This document shows positions 292 to 10,100 of a stretch of 64,000 nt of DNA, in pieces. A program made the translations under genes and the position numbers. The DNA lies in NCBI RefSeq assembly GCF_003704095.1, contig NW_020843367.1, positions 434,001-498,000 of the forward strand, in the 5' to 3' direction. Within the stretch, counting starts at the first letter, position 1. Every line of letters starts with the position of its first letter. This stretch comes from Pocillopora damicornis. Lineage: Eukaryota. The notes beneath the pieces were generated by a model, which ran no database searches, was not told where the DNA came from, and was given only the letters and a program-made list of their open reading frames with translations.

Positions 292-3200
292 CTTATGCAT
301 GCGATGTTTCAACTCTGACAGACTACACGCCTTCATAATCTCACTCTGACTTCGACCTCCAATCCGCACAATCCCCTCAGAATGAAACTTGTGGATCCCT
401 TCCAGAAACTGGTCCAGTGCGTGGTTTGTGTAACAGACAACAAGAAATGGGCGACGCTCCGACAGCAGAGGGGCAACGTCACGTTCGTCATCAAGAAATT
501 CAGTACCAGTGTCCCACTTCAACTTGTTGTGCAACAAAACATTAGCGATCTAAAATGAACAATTGAAAGAAAAAGATAAATGAAAATAAATTTGTAATTG
601 CTCTCTCTCTCAGGACTGACCAAACCGACACACAAACACTATTACTTGAGACAAACAATGAATGGTTCAAATGTTCTGCGGCCAAAAGGTGAGTCGACCG
701 GATCTTTATAGGGCGTGCCAGTAAGCTGTGCGACATCAGCGGCATCTCTGGCTGCTTCACTGTTCAAACCGCTAGTCATACAAGAAGGTACGCAGGCCCG
801 ACCGAAACTCAACTTTTGCATCATTTTTAGGAAGTTATAACAGTAAAACCGAAGTGTATAGTTTACTTTACACTTGATAAATATATTTATATTACTTATT
901 CAACCAAAAATAGAAAAATTGAAATTGCGACGTCTAACCCGGGCTAAGAATATTTTCGTTGAGTCTTCATTGTTTTTGGTATGGCTTGCACTTACTGTTG
1001 TTTTCTTTTAAGCAGAAATTAATTTGATTGAAGTATGACCAAATGAATTAGGTCTCTAGGGAGAGTTTTATTGTGTTCAGTTGTTGTTGTTGTTGTTATT
1101 GATTTGGTTTTGGTCATGTCTAGAGTTGCCCTTTTCATGGTTAATCACACACGGCTAAAGAACAACTTTATGACAAGAAAAAAATAAGAAATTCAGTCGT
1201 GGACTCGATAACAGTTCAAAAGGGTTACTCTACCTTCAGACCGATATACGTCTTTCCAGTGCCCGGTGGTCCTTGAATAACCGCGAATTCTTTGGTCAGC
1301 GCCATCTGCAAAGCCCTGTACTGAGAGTCATCTAGTTCCAGATCATCGGCTGATGGCCAGTGAGCAAGGTGCAGAAGTGGCACATCAGTTCCTACGATTC
1401 AAAATAAAGGAATTCATGGTAAATTGTGTTTGTATACCAATGTTAGAAAATACAAAGGACAGCATGCACCTGATAACGCCTTATTTTTGTACATCAGTAT
1501 GAAACAGCAGACTAACCTCTACGCACTTCATCCCTCACACTCAACCGCGTTAGTCGTGCCCTCATTTCACTTAGTGAATTCTTGCTGTAAAAAACAGTAA
1601 TCGGTATAGTTTACTTTTCAAATAGAGGGGCATGTATTAATTTTACCAGCTACTTTCTTATATATCAAAGAATCTCGATTGGTCATCAAAACTAGCAATG
1701 TCCGCAGTGTTCCCTCACTTTGCATCAATGTCACATAGCAGATCTTTTAGCATCCAGGTTTTGCCATCAAGAATCGATCAAGATAACTGTAGAAAAAAAG
1801 CTCTAAAAGCTCTTATTCTTAATGGTCGTCAATGTGGTCTTTAGAACTTAGCCAATTAGTGACAAGATCCACAATGCACTTCTCTCCTGAGACTCGTCAT
1901 CTCCCCTTCACAAGCACCACCAGTCTCAATTCAGTCCATTTGTTGGCCCTCCTCATCAATGTACTTTAATAAACACTAACTTGTTTCTCAGTCTAACATA
2001 ATACCTTCCAGTGCTGCCACTGTTGCTTCCTTTCTTCATAATCGGCGTCAGATCAAATGTCACTCGTCCTCTTAACCTGTTTCTCAGGTAAGCCGGTGCC
2101 TCAACATGTTTTTGACAATTAACGATGTATCTCTGCGTTGAAGCAAAGGAAAAAGAAACAGTTTTGTTGACGCTATTATGAAAACTACAACGAAGTATCG
2201 AGATCGTGAAGGACTATGTTTATACTAATTTCTCTAGAAGTATTTTTCACCATGATGCTGTTTTGACGTAGCTTAAGCACGAGAGGGACAGTCAGTGAAG
2301 GCAGTAACATCACAGGATTTTAGAACACTTTCTTGTAGCGTAATTGATGAACGACAGATGACAAGAATTCCCAGAGTATGGGGAAAAATGCTTGAAAAAT
2401 AGACTGATTTATGAAAAGGATTGCAACAGGTAACTGACAGTGCTTCTTATCATCAATTCATTTTCTTTCCTCTGATCTTCGTGTTTGACATACAAATCCT
2501 GAACTACAGCGTAAGAAACCATAATGATAATAAGATATTTTATCATGTGATCATACGTTACCTGTAAGGGCAGCTGATGTGGCTGAACTTCTTTTAACCC
2601 CTCAAGGATATGACGATATGCTTCAAAGTACACAGTACTCTCTACCATCTGATACACTTCACCCTCTTCAAGTCTCACATTATCAGATAGTTTGATGAAT
2701 TGAATATCTACTATACCCTACAGAAAAACAAGCAGTTACTACTGGATAAAAGATTAACAGAATTTTGATAGACTTCGATGAGAGAACCAATCAGATTTGA
2801 TATACTATGATAGACGATGATGATGATGAGGGCGCCATTCTGATTGGCTGAGTTACATGATATATGATGTCTTCCAAACATGAGATACTAAATTCAGTCA
2901 CCTGTTTTAAATCTTTGAGATCTCGATTGGCCACGGTTGCAAACACAAAACTGCCAAACTTGTCCTTAGATAGACACATCAGTGAGCCAAAGATAAGCCG
3001 CTTGCTGTTTTCCCAACGTACTTTCCTTAGATTTGTGTTGTCAAACTTTACTTTGTACTGGAGTCCGTTCGAGGTACATACGGGGTACAGCAACTGGACG
3101 TCTTTATACACCCGTATGTCCTGTAGAGCACCAATCTTAGCGGAGCCAATACGTTCTAATAACTTGGCAATCCCTTCACGAAGGGGTCTCACGAAGTCTT

Positions 3201-4151
3201 CACGAAGGAGCCGAAATTGCACATCCAAATAATGTTCCGCATCGTGATAGCTCCCGTCGACTTTGTTCCTTCTGAGGAAGGGTCTCTCTCCAGTCAAAAT
3301 GTCTTCTTGAGTCGGAATAACACTGAGATGTCGGAAATCATCGGGCGGGTTTAAGTCATCGTTCTCACCGGCTAGAAATTAAAAAAAATGACAATCAGCA
3401 TAAAGAATATTTTACTCTTTTGCGATTAAACTACGCATCTCTCACCATTTCTCCGTACTCTTCCTCTGCCTTGTCGCCTCTCTTCATCCTTTCTTTTCAG
3501 TTCGGAAGCCTTCTCTGTTTTCAATTTCATCAGTTCACCTACTTCATTCATCAGGTTTGCGTCTTCCAAATTTCCTTTTTCGGACAATACCATAGCTCCA
3601 CAGTACAGATCGGGTATTGGTAAATCGGCGTATGCATTTGGGAATCTTCGTAACAGTTCATTCATTACTTTTATCACATTTTTTAAGAACTCTGCTAAGT
3701 CAGAAGGTGACCTTCTGCTTGCGGACAAGCTGTTGAGATGTTGTCTTAAATTTAAGTTGAGAAATAAAGACCCTGGCAGTAGGTTAAGCAGCTTAATAAG
3801 GTACTCCTTCGAGCTGCAATCGCATGCTTTGCTAAGAATGCTCACAATCAAGACAATAACGTCATCTGTCATTGGAGACTGCTCTTTCAATAAAAATTCA
3901 GAGGCCGGGAAGCATCGACTTGATGTCAAATCGAGGACAATTTCATCTGGAGTCTTGCTCTGTAAGTCTTTTAGTGCTTTGAATCCAAGCCTTATCGGAC
4001 GGCGTGTTTCCGTATCACCATAAGCACCACGCCCTCCTCTGCCCCCTCCCCTTGCACCCCCTCTACCGCCTCTCCAAGGACGTCCTCTTCCACCTCTAGC
4101 TCCCCTGCCACCACCACTTCTATAACTCCGGTTCCCCACAAAGTCTTCCAT
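292..4151 (-). CDS. ZNFX1: NFX1-type zinc finger protein 1 (UPF1-like SF1 RNA helicase), 5' part; gene presumably continues beyond the left edge
   Basis: Phase-consistent GT-AG exons 4151-3446, 3371-2902, 2717-2562, 2132-2005, 1584-1517, 1391-1233, 549-292. N-terminal RGG box and ZNFX1-type motifs PPDDFRHLSVIPT, HYLDVQFRLLREDFVRPLREGI, WENSKRLIFGSL, MVESTVYFEAYRHIL, Walker A IQGPPGTGKT, VVCYTNHALDQFLE, IVRIGGRS. Confidence 0.93.
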
Positions 4152-4949
4152 GGAGTGTCTCGATTTCCTCAGTCAGTTAAGGATATTTCAGAAGCTTTTG
4201 AAGCCAGCACTTTTTTTACTTGACCATGTTTAGCTGAAAATGAGTAGAGCAGATAAGTATCTTGAACATTATTATGCTTCATGAATTACTTTGACCATGT
4301 GATTTAACATTAGTAAAAGAAAAGGTTAATGTAAAACTCTTGGAACAAATGATTCAGATTTTAAATGTGAATTTAAAACATTAACCTTTAAGATTAAATT
4401 AAATCGCCTTCACTTCAGTTCATGAAATTTCACTGACCAGCTGTACATGAAGTCAGTGGATAACTTCATCACATCCTTATCAGCAGTATGTATTGGTAAA
4501 CAAGAAAACAAGAGGCATCACCTAGCGACATGGTTTCACTTGTCTTTTAAAATAATTTCAGTTGATCCCATCTCCATGCGTTATACCAGTTGCCTGAAGT
4601 AATTTTAGGCTGTGTAATAAAACTGAGAGGTGTAAAGGCAATTGTGACTGATCCAGAGCAGAATGACATATGCGATATGAAGTGGGGCAATGTGCGATAA
4701 ATTACGTAAACTATACCATATCCACAGAAAATGCTTCAGCGGGCGTTCAAAGTCTATTTTAGAGAGGTAAATTCCCTAGACTTTGTCCCGTGACAGTGAC
4801 TGACGAAAATAGAAATGTAAATAAGAACACTGAGTGATACAACGTAAAGTTGATCGCTGACTGTACAGCTTTCATGTCTCTGGAACACTCAAAATGGCTG
4901 CACAACCGCTATCAAAGCTTTCAAAGTCTTGAAATACTTTTTTTTAGGT

Positions 4950-6390
4950 TACTTACCTTAAAGTGACGTTGAATTTGTGAAATGATTAATTTAAATTAGA
5001 ATTATTGATCTTGTTTTCTTGAATTTGGCATTTTTTGACGAGTTTTGCGATTTTCCTGGAATTGCAACGTCGCGTGACATTAGACATATTAGAAACAACA
5101 TAACATTTGGTCAAGAAAGTGAAAGGTGAGAACAATCTGCGGAGTATGTAACTAGAGGTATGGAACCAGCAACTTGCAGCTACAGACCCGTCTCTGGCAT
5201 ACGCACGTTATCGTGACAACTGCCATTCTCACCCGAGAAGGAGACATTATGCAATCGAATCGTTATGAATTTCACTCGCTTGAAGTGAAGCGAACTAATG
5301 CAGTCAAGTGAAGACTCAAGCGAAACTATTTGCCTGTAGACAGACCTAACGCCAAATCTAGCATCCTTTCTTAGAGGATTTCTCTCTCTCTCCTGCTTTG
5401 CATTTCTGCAACTGAGGGGGTTTGCTCGGGAACAACGTACAGAAGCACTACCGGAGAAAATAGAAAGCAAAATATACACACAATCGCTTTCAGGTCGCTG
5501 AAGAATCATAATTCACAAAACCATCGAAAAATCTCAAACCACCGATAAATCTCGAAAATTTCAACCGCATGGTATTGAATAATGCTTCATCAGCTTTCCT
5601 TTTGACTTCCGTGTAAGCAATCGTGCTTCTAACGACCCCGTTCGTTTCTTCATAGGCGACAAATAAATTAGAATTTGCCCTTTTTTCACTGCAACGGCCC
5701 TTTCCCCGAGACATCACACGATACCTTTCTTTTTGTTTTAAGTCTCTTATGCGCGCCGAATCGAATCAAAGACAGGTAAATGTTTACAATGTGATCCGAG
5801 TCAATCGAGTTCGATAAAAATTACCTTTCGTTCCTTGATGATACCAGTTTCAAGCAAGGACTAAGAGCTCCCAGCCAGATGTAAAGACCACAGTTGTTTC
5901 AAACAGTATCAATGAGAAAACACGAACATCATAAACCTTCGAAATAAAACTGATCTAATCGAAACACACTGAGTTTTCCGAGAAAAACCAGTTTGATTGC
6001 ATTCATATATGGACCGCTATCCAATGAAATGATAGTTGGTCATTCGGGGAAACCGAATATTTGCTTCCGGGAAAAGGGTTTTTTCCCTTTTGTCTTTCAT
6101 GCATAATTAACTAAAAGCTTCCGGTTTGTCCCAAGAAAAACAAAAATATGAATGAACCTTCTGAACCTTAGGCACCCATCGTAACCAGCTTTTTGAATGC
6201 AATCGAGGTTTGTAAGAGGATAATTTGTGAGCGAGATACGGAAGAATACGGGAAAATCAAGATTTTAAAAGCATATTTCCACGTCGTGAGTAACTTCGGC
6301 GACTTTCACGACACCAAGTATTGTCTAAAAGGATATTGTAATTTACGTATTCTTAGAAAGCCTGGGTAATTTCGGGGAAATTTTTCGCAA
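4950..6390 (-). promoter_or_regulatory. Putative ZNFX1 promoter region(s) with GAS (TTCN3GAA), ISRE/IRF-E and kB-like motifs
   Basis: TTCCTGGAA 5053, GAAAGTGAAAG 5115, TTCCGAGAA 5976, TTCGGGGAA 6043, TTCCGGGAA 6065, GGGTTTTTTCCC 6076, TTCTTAGAA 6350, TTCGGGGAA 6371. Minus-strand donors near 4957 (AG|gtaagt) and 5824 (AG|gtaatt) and an acceptor at ~4234 suggest non-coding first exons. Confidence 0.55.
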
Positions 6391-7100
6391 ACCTCTGTTC
6401 ATTAAAAAACAAACGCTGTTTTTACGTAAGTAATAAATAACATGTGGGACATAGTTTTGATAGAAAACCTTTGAGGATGAATTGGTGACTCCGTAATCAT
6501 TTATTAACAAACCACTGAAAGCCGTGTATAGTTATAATTTTACTTTTCTTAGTGCTTCGGCGAAAATACGTTAATATAACGAGACAAAAACATAAAACTT
6601 CTTTCTCCCATTTTTAAACCGGCATCGAAACCATTAGTGGCAAGAAAAGGTCGGCAAGTAGTTGAAAATGAATTTCTTATAACCAGCTAAAACCCATTTC
6701 CCCATCTTTATACGTACACATAGAAGGCAAAGTAAACATAAAAGTAACTAAGTCCCTTCGACCTCCTTTTCATGGCAATTCTTAAATAAGTTATTCATGA
6801 TGATGTGTCTTCAGTATTATATAAGCTAGTATAGCTTCAAGTTTAATATAAGCAAATGTTAAGGAATCAATCTGTGCTACAAACTGAATTTGGAATTTTC
6901 TTCTCACAGCATTTCAACATCAGGATATAGCACTTGAATGTTGACACGAACACAGGAAGAATTCACCTCCAACCACTGAGTTTGCTTCCGATTCAAACAT
7001 TTTTTAAATATCTCAACAAAATATCGATCTTCCAATTGAGGGAAACTCGTCTAGTGTTCAAGGTTGAAGAAGATCAAAAAAGATGAAAACGGTGGTGTTG

Positions 7101-10100
7101 TTATGTAGTACTGTTGAGCGCAGTGTGTGAATCTCTATCAGTTGAATTGTCTGTGTTCAATGCGGCCAGGTTTGGTAAGCCATCCTTGGTAACATTCTGT
7201 TGTGATGCATCAGATAAATTTGCCTCCTGTGAGGTAAGCTGAGTGCTCCCCTGCATTGAAGAAACATTGCTTGCCTGTTTGGGTTGCCTTGCACCAAATA
7301 TGGTACTACCCACTCGAACATTTGTACTTCCCATTAAAATCTGACAAATTAAAAGAGAAAGTTTACATAAGGAAACCACTTCAATTTAACCCTTTAACCC
7401 ATAAGAGTGCCTAGCATCTAATTTCTCCTTACAGTATCACCCCTGAATCAAACAAAGATCACAAGAATAAAGGATATCATCAACAACTAAAGAAGCTCTA
7501 ATTGAATGTTAAACAAAATCCCTTGTCTGCACCATGGGAAATGTATTGAAAACAGTATGGAGAATATGCATACTGATGTTAAGGTGTTAAGCATGTTAAG
7601 GGTTAACCAATGAATCATGACACAATAATATGCCTTCACTTACAGCTTCCTCAAAATCACTTGACATTCCCATACTCAATTCAACATTCTCAAGGCTAAG
7701 ACTTAGTTTCTCACAAATATCCTTGCGACAGTCAACCAAAGTCTGAAAATAAATCAATGTACTGAAGTTAAAGAGACTTACCTTGAGCATGCAACATAAC
7801 TTTATTTGGTTATCCTAATAATTATGCATTATAACTGCATTCAGTTATCCACTGTAGTTTCAATCTACAGGACTATTTAGAACTCCACCTTAAGAGCTTG
7901 ACCAGTCATACTATTGATTTAAGAACTTGTTTAGTACAGCCAGCTTAATCATTAAACAAGGATATTGAGGCCTCATTGTGTTTAGATTGAAGGTAGGGTT
8001 ATAACCAGTTTTATTTCAACACTTCATGGACAAAAAACTGTTCACCCAATTATCTGGTGTAACTTTCCTAACAATTATGTGTTGCATGTTGTTTTACAAT
8101 GTTGTATCATTGATTAAAGTAGACTCCATTTCTACATCTCACAATAATTGCATCAACAGTGAAAAATGTGTTTATTGCATCAAACAAAATTGTTATGTAT
8201 GTTTTCATACATTTCATCGAGGAAAAAAAAATCAAACAAACAAACAAACAAAAATGCTCCATTACATTAACCAGTACATGTTTTGCACCCTTTCTCACTT
8301 ATTGATCAATAAAAATAAAAGAAAGACAGTTTCACAATCTGCTTACAGTAAAATCAGGATTGGGACCTTGACTCCAGTCATGATTCATTTCCCCAATGGT
8401 CATTAGTCCTGAAAACTTTAAATGCGCACAGTGGGTGATAATGTGTTCCACAAGTTCTGCACATTGATCACGTAGACATCCACTCTTACCTGAAGAGAAG
8501 TTACCATATTATTCAACTGTACTGCCATTTCATAACAGGGCAAATGTAAAATGCCATCCTTAAGTTTTCATTTTTTTAATTGTTGGCGTGCTTTTTTGGC
8601 CAACAAGTTTTCGTTATATACAACATCAGTGGAGATAAACATAATTATCATATCTCTCAGTAAGAATGTTCACAATGATTGGCCCATTTATTTCACTATA
8701 CCGCCTTCTAAATTCAAAAGTTTGAACATTAAATATACATTAAATATCTAACTAACTTGGCTTCTTAAAAGTGTTAGTGAGTAGTACTGAGTTTGCAAAC
8801 TTGCAAGTAGAAACACAACAATTGATCTTCATCTTAGGCTGAGAAACAGTAGCACTTACTTTCTTCTTTGCTTGTGTTAACTTGTATCATAACATTAAGA
8901 GGACTGGGTTTGTTTAGTTTTCCCCAGGAAATATTAAGAGAGTTGGCAAGCTTCACACTGTCCACAGTCTCCACCATGAAAAGGTTTGGCACTCCTATAT
9001 TAGAGAAAGCCAAAATGGTCCCAATAAACATAGTTTGAATTGACTTCATGCAAGTCTTTCAATCCCAGGATGAACAGATAAATAAAATTCTCCATACAAT
9101 ATCAATACACATCATGCTGACTGGTGATGAAAACAAGGAACACATCTCAACTAGGGGACACAAACTGATTAAATACTAAAAGTTAACAATATAGAAAATA
9201 CACATACACAATAGATAGTGAGGAGAATTACATGTTAATGAAATATTGATAACAATAATATTATGATATTCATGTTATAATGAGATTCATGTCATAATAA
9301 GATCTTGGAAGTGAAAAGGTTGATAATAATATACAGTAAATGGACAACAACTAGAGCCAATATAGATAATCATGGCAATTGTTTCCCAAAAGTGAATATT
9401 CAGAACATTAATAAACTTTAAGATATGATCATATCACTGTCACTTGTTAGTGGTGACTGATACTTTGAAAACTTGTTGTAACCATCAGCGTCAAGTGAGG
9501 AGTTGTTGTCAGTTGAGTGTTATAAATCTGGTTTGTGTAAACTGATTGGTCAGTTTAACCTTGAAGTTATTGGCTATAAGTCTCAAGCAGTACAAGTCAG
9601 CCGTGATTAGCCAGTTTCTATCCAACTACAAGATCAAATGATCCCCCAGCTTCTGACCATATTCAGTAACACTAAAATAGTTAGCAAAGTGTTTCAATCC
9701 TTACCAACAAGGTTATTGCATTTGTTACTCTGCAAATGACCAATAAAATGCCACCTTATGTCATTAAGTGGCTGAATCTGTCATACACATGAAGGGAAAA
9801 TAAGAAAGTCATTTTGTGAGATGATTTAGGAAAGGGTTTGTTCATCATTATGTAAATCATTGTAACTCTGTGTAAAATACATCAATGGTTCCAAGTCAGA
9901 CTTCACTGAAAACATTTCAGATTCCCCTTAGCACCATATGACTAAGACTAGCATAATTGTCCTATGCCTAGAAAAGAATACCAAATGTTACCAATACCAC
10001 AGCAGTGATACTACCAGAAGTATGTACCAAAGGTAAAAACAGAAGGAGATATTGGCTATAGATAGGAAAATTAACAATTTCTCCTCTTCAGGTGGTAACA

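Follow-up and report, generated by a model that had tools for sequence, protein, structure and literature searches.

Is the programme of interferon-stimulated genes (ISGs) older than interferon? This question, still open in the evolution of immunity, is raised by a 64,000-nucleotide stretch of the stony coral Pocillopora damicornis (RefSeq assembly GCF_003704095.1, contig NW_020843367.1, positions 434,001 to 498,000; hereafter the window, whose own numbering is used throughout), in which palindromes of the form TTCN3GAA, the gamma-activated site (GAS) of STAT factors, cluster in front of a minus-strand homolog of ZNFX1. Mammalian ZNFX1 is an interferon-stimulated sensor of double-stranded RNA, and C. 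elegans ZNFX-1 is a germ-granule small-RNA factor. A first-pass annotation, made from the letters of the window, had proposed that an ancestral, interferon-independent STAT/IRF/NF-kB regulon drives the coral gene. Our analysis makes it probable that the cluster is the proximal promoter of ZNFX1 and that its core, a composite GAS/IRF-type module of ~75 bp (6021-6087), is driven by STAT and IRF; the binding of these factors, and inducibility in this coral, are what we infer from the sequence. The interferon-independent regulon proposed earlier is partly supported: its STAT/IRF part gained strong comparative support (a conserved pair and core, similar pairs at other genes and a site cluster at a SOCS gene), and its NF-kB part did not, the consensus being absent from this promoter.

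A conserved composite module in front of ZNFX1

On the gene strand, the module runs from a kB-like 12-mer to a first GAS (GAS1) set on an ETS core, a second GAS (GAS2) 22 bp further on and laid over an TTTCNNTTTC core, and finally a CCAAT box, the whole lying directly upstream of, or at, the transcript 5' end. Its parts and the other candidate sites of the promoter are given below (ISRE, interferon-stimulated response element; UTR, untranslated region).

6076-6087, minus strand: kB-like 12-mer, GGGAAAAAACCC in gene sense, aligning with GGGAAAATTCCC, GGGACAATTCCC or GGGATAATTCCC of other corals
6065-6073, minus strand: GAS1, TTCCCGGAA in gene sense, a perfect TTCC-N-GGAA palindrome
6049-6058, plus strand: IRF/ISRE-like core, overlapping GAS2
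6043-6051, minus strand: GAS2, TTCCCCGAA in gene sense, 22 bp centre to centre from GAS1
6021-6025, plus strand: CCAAT box, ATTGG in gene sense, ~20 bp beyond GAS2, in 7 of 7 aligned sequences
6118-6124, minus strand: second ETS-type CCGGAAG, upstream of the module, with no conserved alignment
5976-5984, minus strand: GAS3 (TTCCGAGAA), at or slightly within the 5' end of exon 1
6350-6379, minus strand: distal GAS pair (6350 and 6371), 21 bp centre to centre, ~300-400 bp upstream of the transcript 5' end
6556-6564, no strand assigned: sixth TTCN3GAA, inside the 3' UTR of the upstream gene in two RNA runs

Related loci were reached through proteins of open reading frames (ORFs) that resemble the N-terminal coding exon, and from there through the genomic contigs of other coral assemblies. 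Five loci from four other assemblies (L014, L015, L016, L017 and L018) were compared with this gene and its tandem paralog ZNFX1-B, and an alignment covered seven sequences; the comparison also took in a non-syntenic paralog locus (L011), and a 98%-identical Tara Pacific contig (L012) ends inside intron 1. Synteny is retained in L014, L015, L016 and L018, where a YggS/PLPBP-like gene is kept upstream; the spacer of L017 is longer. All five related loci, and the tandem paralog too, carry a counterpart of 6065/6043, two TTCN3GAA sites spaced by exactly 22 bp. By chance, a pair at one fixed spacing is expected ~0.002 times per 10 kb. In L011, the 22-bp pair was absent.

The promoter alignments show an island of identity amid flanks that otherwise cannot be aligned to this genome. 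Within it, the order on the gene strand is the kB-like 12-mer, TTCCC[G/A]GAA[G/A]C, TTCGNTTTC running into TTC-NNN-GAA, and ATTGG 20-odd bases on. Across the seven sequences TTCGNTTTC and ATTGG are invariant, as are eight of the nine positions of GAS1; in GAS2 the TTC and GAA half-sites are invariant in 7 of 7 and the spacer reads CCC, TAA, TAC or TGA. A G-to-A change in L016 and L018 turns GAS1 into TTCCCAGAA, which retains the GAS and loses the ETS GGAA core, and the five related loci, like ZNFX1-B, all have a perfect IRF/ISRE core (GAAACCGAAA or GAAAGCGAAA). The fixed half-sites of GAS2 around a variable spacer, the change of GAS1 in L016 and L018 and the perfect TTTCNNTTTC core of the relatives together argue for constraint on a GAS site, and the half-sites, but not the spacer, appear to be under purifying selection. 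From the module to the ATG, the related loci contain no GAS or ISRE other than the module itself, except for one site in L017, and in the 700 bp upstream of it a GAS occurs only in L016. Because L014, L015, L016 and L018 are mutually close, with this genome and L017 more distant, roughly three independent lineages lie behind this conservation. The ancestral status that the annotation had proposed for its regulon is shown here within Scleractinia, and no wider than that.

Transcript mapping and identity of the gene

RNA evidence consisted of contigs from four poly(A) runs belonging to four studies and labelled as coral or marine metagenome. All four runs carry the same splice joint, 4233|5825 (GT..AG on the minus strand), which defines a non-coding first exon and so places the cluster on the ZNFX1 promoter. 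Depending on the run, the 5' end of exon 1 lies at least at 5959, 5965 or 6046, and the 6043/6065 pair falls within ~110 bp of it, in regulatory DNA of its presumed target gene. The earlier placement of the sites upstream of ZNFX1 was therefore correct and could be sharpened to the promoter and first exon, not 1.8 kb off the transcript; a position far from the transcription start site (TSS) is contradicted by the same contig ends. The intergenic space is only ~450 bp, filled by the cluster and bounded by the 3' ends of the upstream gene.

3446-4233, minus strand: exon 2, where translation starts (ATG at 4151); the ZNFX1 domain is encoded in the exon that follows, 2791-3297
4234-5824, minus strand: intron 1 (1,591 nt), with one GAS (5053) and TTTCACTTTC (5115-5124)
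5825-6046, minus strand: non-coding exon 1 of ZNFX1, its 3' end set by the splice joint
6489-7340, minus strand: final exon and 3' UTR of the YggS/PLPBP-like neighbour, with the stop at 7101

The gene belongs to the ZNFX1 family by its PF25396 domain (profile search, E 1e-30, exon 2791-3297) and by AAA_11/AAA_12 helicase exons in L012, a Pocillopora-type contig; protein searches were run exon by exon. NFX1-type Cys-rich repeats were seen by eye in the last exon of the paralog. A Laminin_G_3-like exon stands between the ZNFX1 domain and the helicase in the coral loci L012, L014, L015 and L016, and several coral assemblies have two or three ZNFX1 paralogs per contig. In intron 1, the GAS (TTCCTGGAA, plus strand) and the TTTCACTTTC string (perfect, gene strand) are 60 bp apart, and RNA contigs over 5053-5124 reach intron-level depth only.

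Similar site pairs at other antiviral-type genes

The arrangement of the pair recurs in this genome. The pattern TTCCCRGAA-N13-TTCNNNGAA gave five matches against none for the reversed control: this promoter (ZNFX1-A), the tandem paralog ZNFX1-B, two tandem RIG-I-like receptor (RLR) genes and one place near unidentified ORFs. The ZNFX1-B site is 17 kb away, in a gene whose exons are 51-75% identical, and its module has a perfect TTTCGCTTTC and ATTGG. The two RLR genes encode CARD_2, DECH-helicase and RIG-I C-terminal (RIG-I_C-RD) domains. Their sites precede the start codons by 130-160 bp, with a consensus GGGAATTTCC overlapping the GAS and a TATA box after it; in another coral, the RLR promoter shares TTCCGGGAATTTCCC and contains three GAS sites.

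A second pattern, TTCSGRGAAA-N5-40-TTCSGRGAAA, gave four matches against two for its control. One is again this promoter. At Dicer (Dicer_PBD, 1.5e-20) the match comes 330 nt before the ATG, and the remaining two precede, each by ~2.4 kb, the ORFs of an APOBEC4-like deaminase (2.2e-17) and of a DEAD/Helicase_C helicase whose RIG-I_C-RD similarity stays below threshold; both of these last sites carry the TTTCNNTTTCNNNGAA fusion. Together, the two patterns mark eight distinct places in the 234-Mb genome, seven of which (two ZNFX1 genes, two RLRs, Dicer, the APOBEC-like deaminase and the helicase) are upstream of nucleic-acid antiviral-type genes, a class that we estimate at perhaps 0.5% of genes. 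Looser fusions rise only 1.5- to 2-fold over control, a modest excess: bare ISRE/GAS fusions number 1,090 genome-wide against 696 (27 against 14 in a stricter form), and GAS/kB fusions 11 against 5.

Three further observations concern these loci. ZNFX1-B (L002:658-6977, or G000:C2:416658-422977) directly follows the ZNFX1 gene of the window on its downstream side, ~11-17 kb to the left of position 1; its promoter module is ~2.2 kb upstream of its ATG, and its middle exons are lost to an assembly gap (a run of N). About 4 kb upstream of the first RLR gene is an ORF with CARD_2 only (L019:4733-5092, plus strand, G000:C1291:50733-51092; E 7e-22), which may be a candidate counterpart of the CARD gene that adjoins RLRb and is conserved across Anthozoa (preprint 10.1101/2025.11.22.689925). 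Finally, four copies of TTTCGATTTCT[C/T]AGAA occur within 17 kb at G000:C1417:296424-313350, possibly promoters of a tandem gene family with an ISRE/GAS fusion.

Encoded factors and a site cluster at a SOCS gene

The STAT, IRF and NF-kB factors that the annotation had assumed are encoded in this genome. A STAT gene lies on the minus strand of contig C1014 (L029/L030, about 60800-72000) as colinear exons matching STAT_bind (E 0.03 and 0.08), STAT_alpha (4e-4), STAT_linker (1.2e-9) and SH2 (2e-7). It was found only at a relaxed threshold, in the form of small colinear exons, and whole-domain six-frame Pfam searches gave none; the splitting of STAT into many small exons accounts for this miss. 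IRF is represented by four DNA-binding domains (E 1e-35 to 9e-32) and the Rel-homology (RHD) family by a single gene.

SOCS genes are classic direct targets of STAT feedback in flies and mammals. In this coral, a short ORF with SH2 and SOCS-box domains (L041:8446-9021) is surrounded by 20 TTCN3GAA per 10 kb, where 4.8 are expected and the N2 and N4 spacers give three and four; five GAS lie within 280 bp upstream, three of them TTCCGAGAA. The same variant recurs at 5976 as well as in the promoters of the RLRs and of the APOBEC-like gene, and its reverse complement, TTCTCGGAA, in the Dicer and helicase promoters. Since the palindrome clusters at a classic STAT target, TTCN3GAA would act as a STAT element in this coral too, which hints at a STAT-SOCS feedback loop. 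The SOCS locus corresponds to G000:C4385:106001-116000, and some of its sites lie downstream of the ORF start. Two further SOCS-like genes had no TTCN3GAA cluster.

Taken together, we propose that after nucleic-acid sensing STAT dimers would occupy both GAS sites of the module, IRF would occupy the TTTCNNTTTC core that overlaps GAS2, and the two together would raise ZNFX1 transcription through a CCAAT-type core promoter, as they do at the GAS/ISRE promoters of vertebrate ISGs; the extra sites at 5976, 6350, 6371 and 6556 may raise occupancy. More tentatively, stony corals might share a code of tandem TTCN3GAA, often fused to an IRF core (TTTCNNTTTCNNNGAA) or a kB site, for ZNFX1, RLR, Dicer, APOBEC-like and SOCS genes. 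This wider regulon is plausible rather than established.

Weighing the evidence

A pattern scan of the window returned six TTCN3GAA sites in 5825-6600 (5976, 6043, 6065, 6350, 6371 and 6556), the first five of them already placed correctly by the annotation. The density that it had pointed out is indeed unusual locally: five sites in 400 bp were reached in 5 of 1,500 first-order Markov simulations of the 64-kb window and six in 600 bp in none of 1,500, and across 5825-6600 the three-base spacer that defines a GAS gave six sites against 0.38 expected, with none for N2 or N4. Its background rate of about one site per 3 kb was too low, the actual rate in the window being ~1 per 2.06 kb. The cluster stretch is single-copy in the 234-Mb genome, which disposes of a multicopy repeat and, together with the absence of internal repeats, ruled out a repeat or transposon origin. 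A heat-shock element reading was dropped as well, TTCNNGAA being absent from the promoter and GAANNTTC present only once.

Several observations weigh against a STAT/IRF-driven module and are gathered here. Across the window as a whole TTCN3GAA shows no excess (31 sites, where shuffles predict 32.3), and the Markov rate scaled to the genome allows about a dozen chance clusters of five in 400 bp, so that density by itself is not decisive. Three of the five sites first noted (5976, 6350 and 6371) were not found in the other coral loci compared, nor were 6556 and the intron 1 strings at 5053 and 5115; as the module is nearly the sole GAS/ISRE in the stretches compared in the relatives, all six would be additions seen only in this genome. 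What the related promoters do keep is the 6065/6043 pair, the IRF core and the CCAAT box. One RNA-run contig, moreover, has a 2-bp insertion after 6353 that would destroy the 6350 site. The IRF/ISRE-like core of this very gene reads GAAACCGAAT, one base off GAAANNGAAA, and the ISRE element is therefore best described as conserved yet degenerate by one base here. The NF-kB consensus GGGRNWYYCC and its relaxed form GGRRNNYYCC have no match in 5825-6600, and in the alignment of the kB-like 12-mer a relaxed match occurs only in L015 and L018; the kB/IRF-like strings listed by the annotation are present as written, and none fits either form or GAAANNGAAA. The exact TSS is beyond the resolution of the contigs, one of which crosses the CCAAT box to 6046.

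The comparison with other genes has its own counterweights. The RLR locus of a third species (L025/L026) has no GAS sites, and the sample behind the regulon is small: this promoter supplied its patterns, and two of its pairs arise from tandem duplication. A genome-wide preference for the 22-bp spacing was not supported, since TTCCCRGAA-anchored pairs at other spacings are about as frequent (47 at N3-12 and 50 at N14-23; controls 13 and 15). As to the factors, profile searches did not detect the N-terminal domain of STAT (STAT_int), for which there is a candidate exon by eye only, unconfirmed. In Nematostella, knock-down of its one STAT or of individual IRFs did not reduce cGAMP-induced expression, for which the authors name incomplete knock-down and redundancy as possible causes, and NF-kB was required for a subset of genes (PMC8713801).

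One alternative keeps a conserved antiviral module and changes its reader, which would be IRF alone on TTTCNNTTTC, with GAS2 as a by-product, or an unknown cnidarian factor on TTCN3GAA. It accords with the invariant TTCGNTTTC core, with the four IRF genes of the genome, with the IRF2/IRF8 homologs that mark activated Nematostella immune cells (PMC13319465) and with the STAT knock-down that left cGAMP induction intact (PMC8713801). However, the GAA that closes GAS2 is invariant without being part of the IRF core, no IRF core accompanies GAS1, an overlapping TTTCNNTTTC is missing from the pairs of the RLR and Dicer genes, and the TTCCGAGAA variant clusters at SOCS, the canonical target in STAT feedback. 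We regard a non-STAT reader as unlikely.

Another possibility, quite unlikely in our judgment, is an ordinary constitutive promoter of ETS and NF-Y, with TTCCCGGAAG as the ETS site, ATTGG as the NF-Y box and TTCN3GAA incidental to DNA rich in GGAA and TTCC. GAS1 does overlap the ETS core CCGGAAG (6064-6070), CCGGAAR sites number two against 0.08 expected (both CCGGAAG), the same motif is found in the ZNFX1-B and C3056 helicase promoters and CCGGAAA in that of Dicer, and the CCAAT box is invariant; ELF5 and ELK3, too, are among the top motifs of induced Nematostella promoters (PMC8476169), and ELF1/ELK1 rise in activated immune cells (PMC13319465). Yet L016 and L018 read TTCCCAGAAG, with the GGAA core gone and TTCN3GAA kept, none of the sequences shows an ETS core at GAS2, whose half-sites persist across four spacers, N2 and N4 spacers are absent, and the pattern matches fall at antiviral-type genes, with the cluster at SOCS, and not at housekeeping genes. 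That a short palindrome merely happened to cluster in AT-rich intergenic DNA is highly improbable, for although the window-wide count (31 versus 32), the dozen or so clusters that simulation allows per genome and the three or four sites not found in related loci would suit it, the identical spacing of the proximal pair in five related loci and the paralog, and its location on the mapped promoter, already contradict chance for 6043/6065.

The upstream neighbour

The minus-strand neighbour upstream looks like a YggS/PLPBP-type gene, judging from conserved motifs read by eye, with no family match. Its transcript 3' ends vary (6489, 6556, 6698 and 6810, a spread of up to 320 nt between runs), which could be alternative polyadenylation or plain contig truncation. 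In its intron, 7341-7643 behaves like a dispersed, highly transcribed short repeat: RNA word depth is 4,000-31,000 in bins 7284-7665, and RNA contigs often break at 7454, 7539 and 7581-7591.

Implications and comparison with known systems

If STAT and IRF do drive the module, an interferon-style gene switch seems to be present in an animal without known interferon, which bears on the relative age of the ISG programme. We know of no interferon receptor or demonstrated JAK in cnidarians. If the shared code also holds, corals would have a STAT-dependent, cytokine-like second antiviral wave with SOCS feedback, a functional equivalent of the interferon/JAK-STAT loop in animals without an identified cytokine or STAT-activating kinase; interferon itself is absent from cnidarians (PMC8713801). 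For coral biology, the module could act as a read-out of antiviral activation in heat stress and disease.

A close published case is Nematostella, where ZNFX1 homologs rank with the most strongly poly(I:C)-induced genes (log2 fold change 5.3 and 3.7) and the top induced promoters are enriched above all in the motifs ELF5, Stat5a::Stat5b, Stat5a, STAT1, ELK3 and Stat4, with IRF and NF-kB motifs also reported as enriched (Lewandowska et al. 2021, PMC8476169). Activated immune cells of the same animal up-regulate homologs of IRF2, FOS, ELF1, STAT5A and ELK1 (PMC13319465). The coral promoter resembles the induced Nematostella promoters in its STAT, ETS and IRF-type motifs. The general idea, STAT/IRF motif enrichment and ZNFX1 induction, is thus already published, and the defined conserved element is not described there: enrichment was measured with vertebrate matrices, whereas here a specific 75-bp module is mapped and conserved, and pairs are listed at the promoters of named genes.

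The tandem GAS of CISH/SOCS-type STAT5 target genes, bound by STAT tetramers, offers a second comparison. The coral pair is about two helical turns apart, and the coral SOCS sites are clustered as well. STAT5 tetramers, however, have an optimum gap of 11-12 bp, with 13 bp among the low-frequency spacings (PMC4990345), and the conserved coral gap is 13 bp, a further point against our interpretation; for this reason a tetramer geometry for the coral pair is left as speculation. Tetramers also require the STAT N-terminal domain, which the profile searches did not detect. The unconserved distal pair (6350/6371) has a 12-bp gap, and other coral GAS pairs are 24-31 bp apart.

With the ZNFX1 of mammals and C. 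elegans, the coral gene shares the ZNFX1 domain (PF25396) and, in L012, the helicase exons; it differs in standing in tandem paralogs and in its Laminin_G_3-like exon. A further comparison is with the GAS/ISRE promoters of vertebrate ISGs, which include composite GAS/kB elements, as in IRF1. The coral elements, predicted from sequence, differ from these in that the ISRE core shares four bases with the GAS (TTTCNNTTTCNNNGAA) and in that Dicer is among the pair-bearing genes. In both, however, TTCN3GAA adjoins or overlaps a GAAANNGAAA-type core, to which the RLR promoters add GGGAATTTCC, the sites lie within ~150 bp of the transcript start or a TATA box, and the targets in the coral (ZNFX1, RLRs and an APOBEC-type deaminase) correspond, as orthologs or analogs, to vertebrate ISGs.

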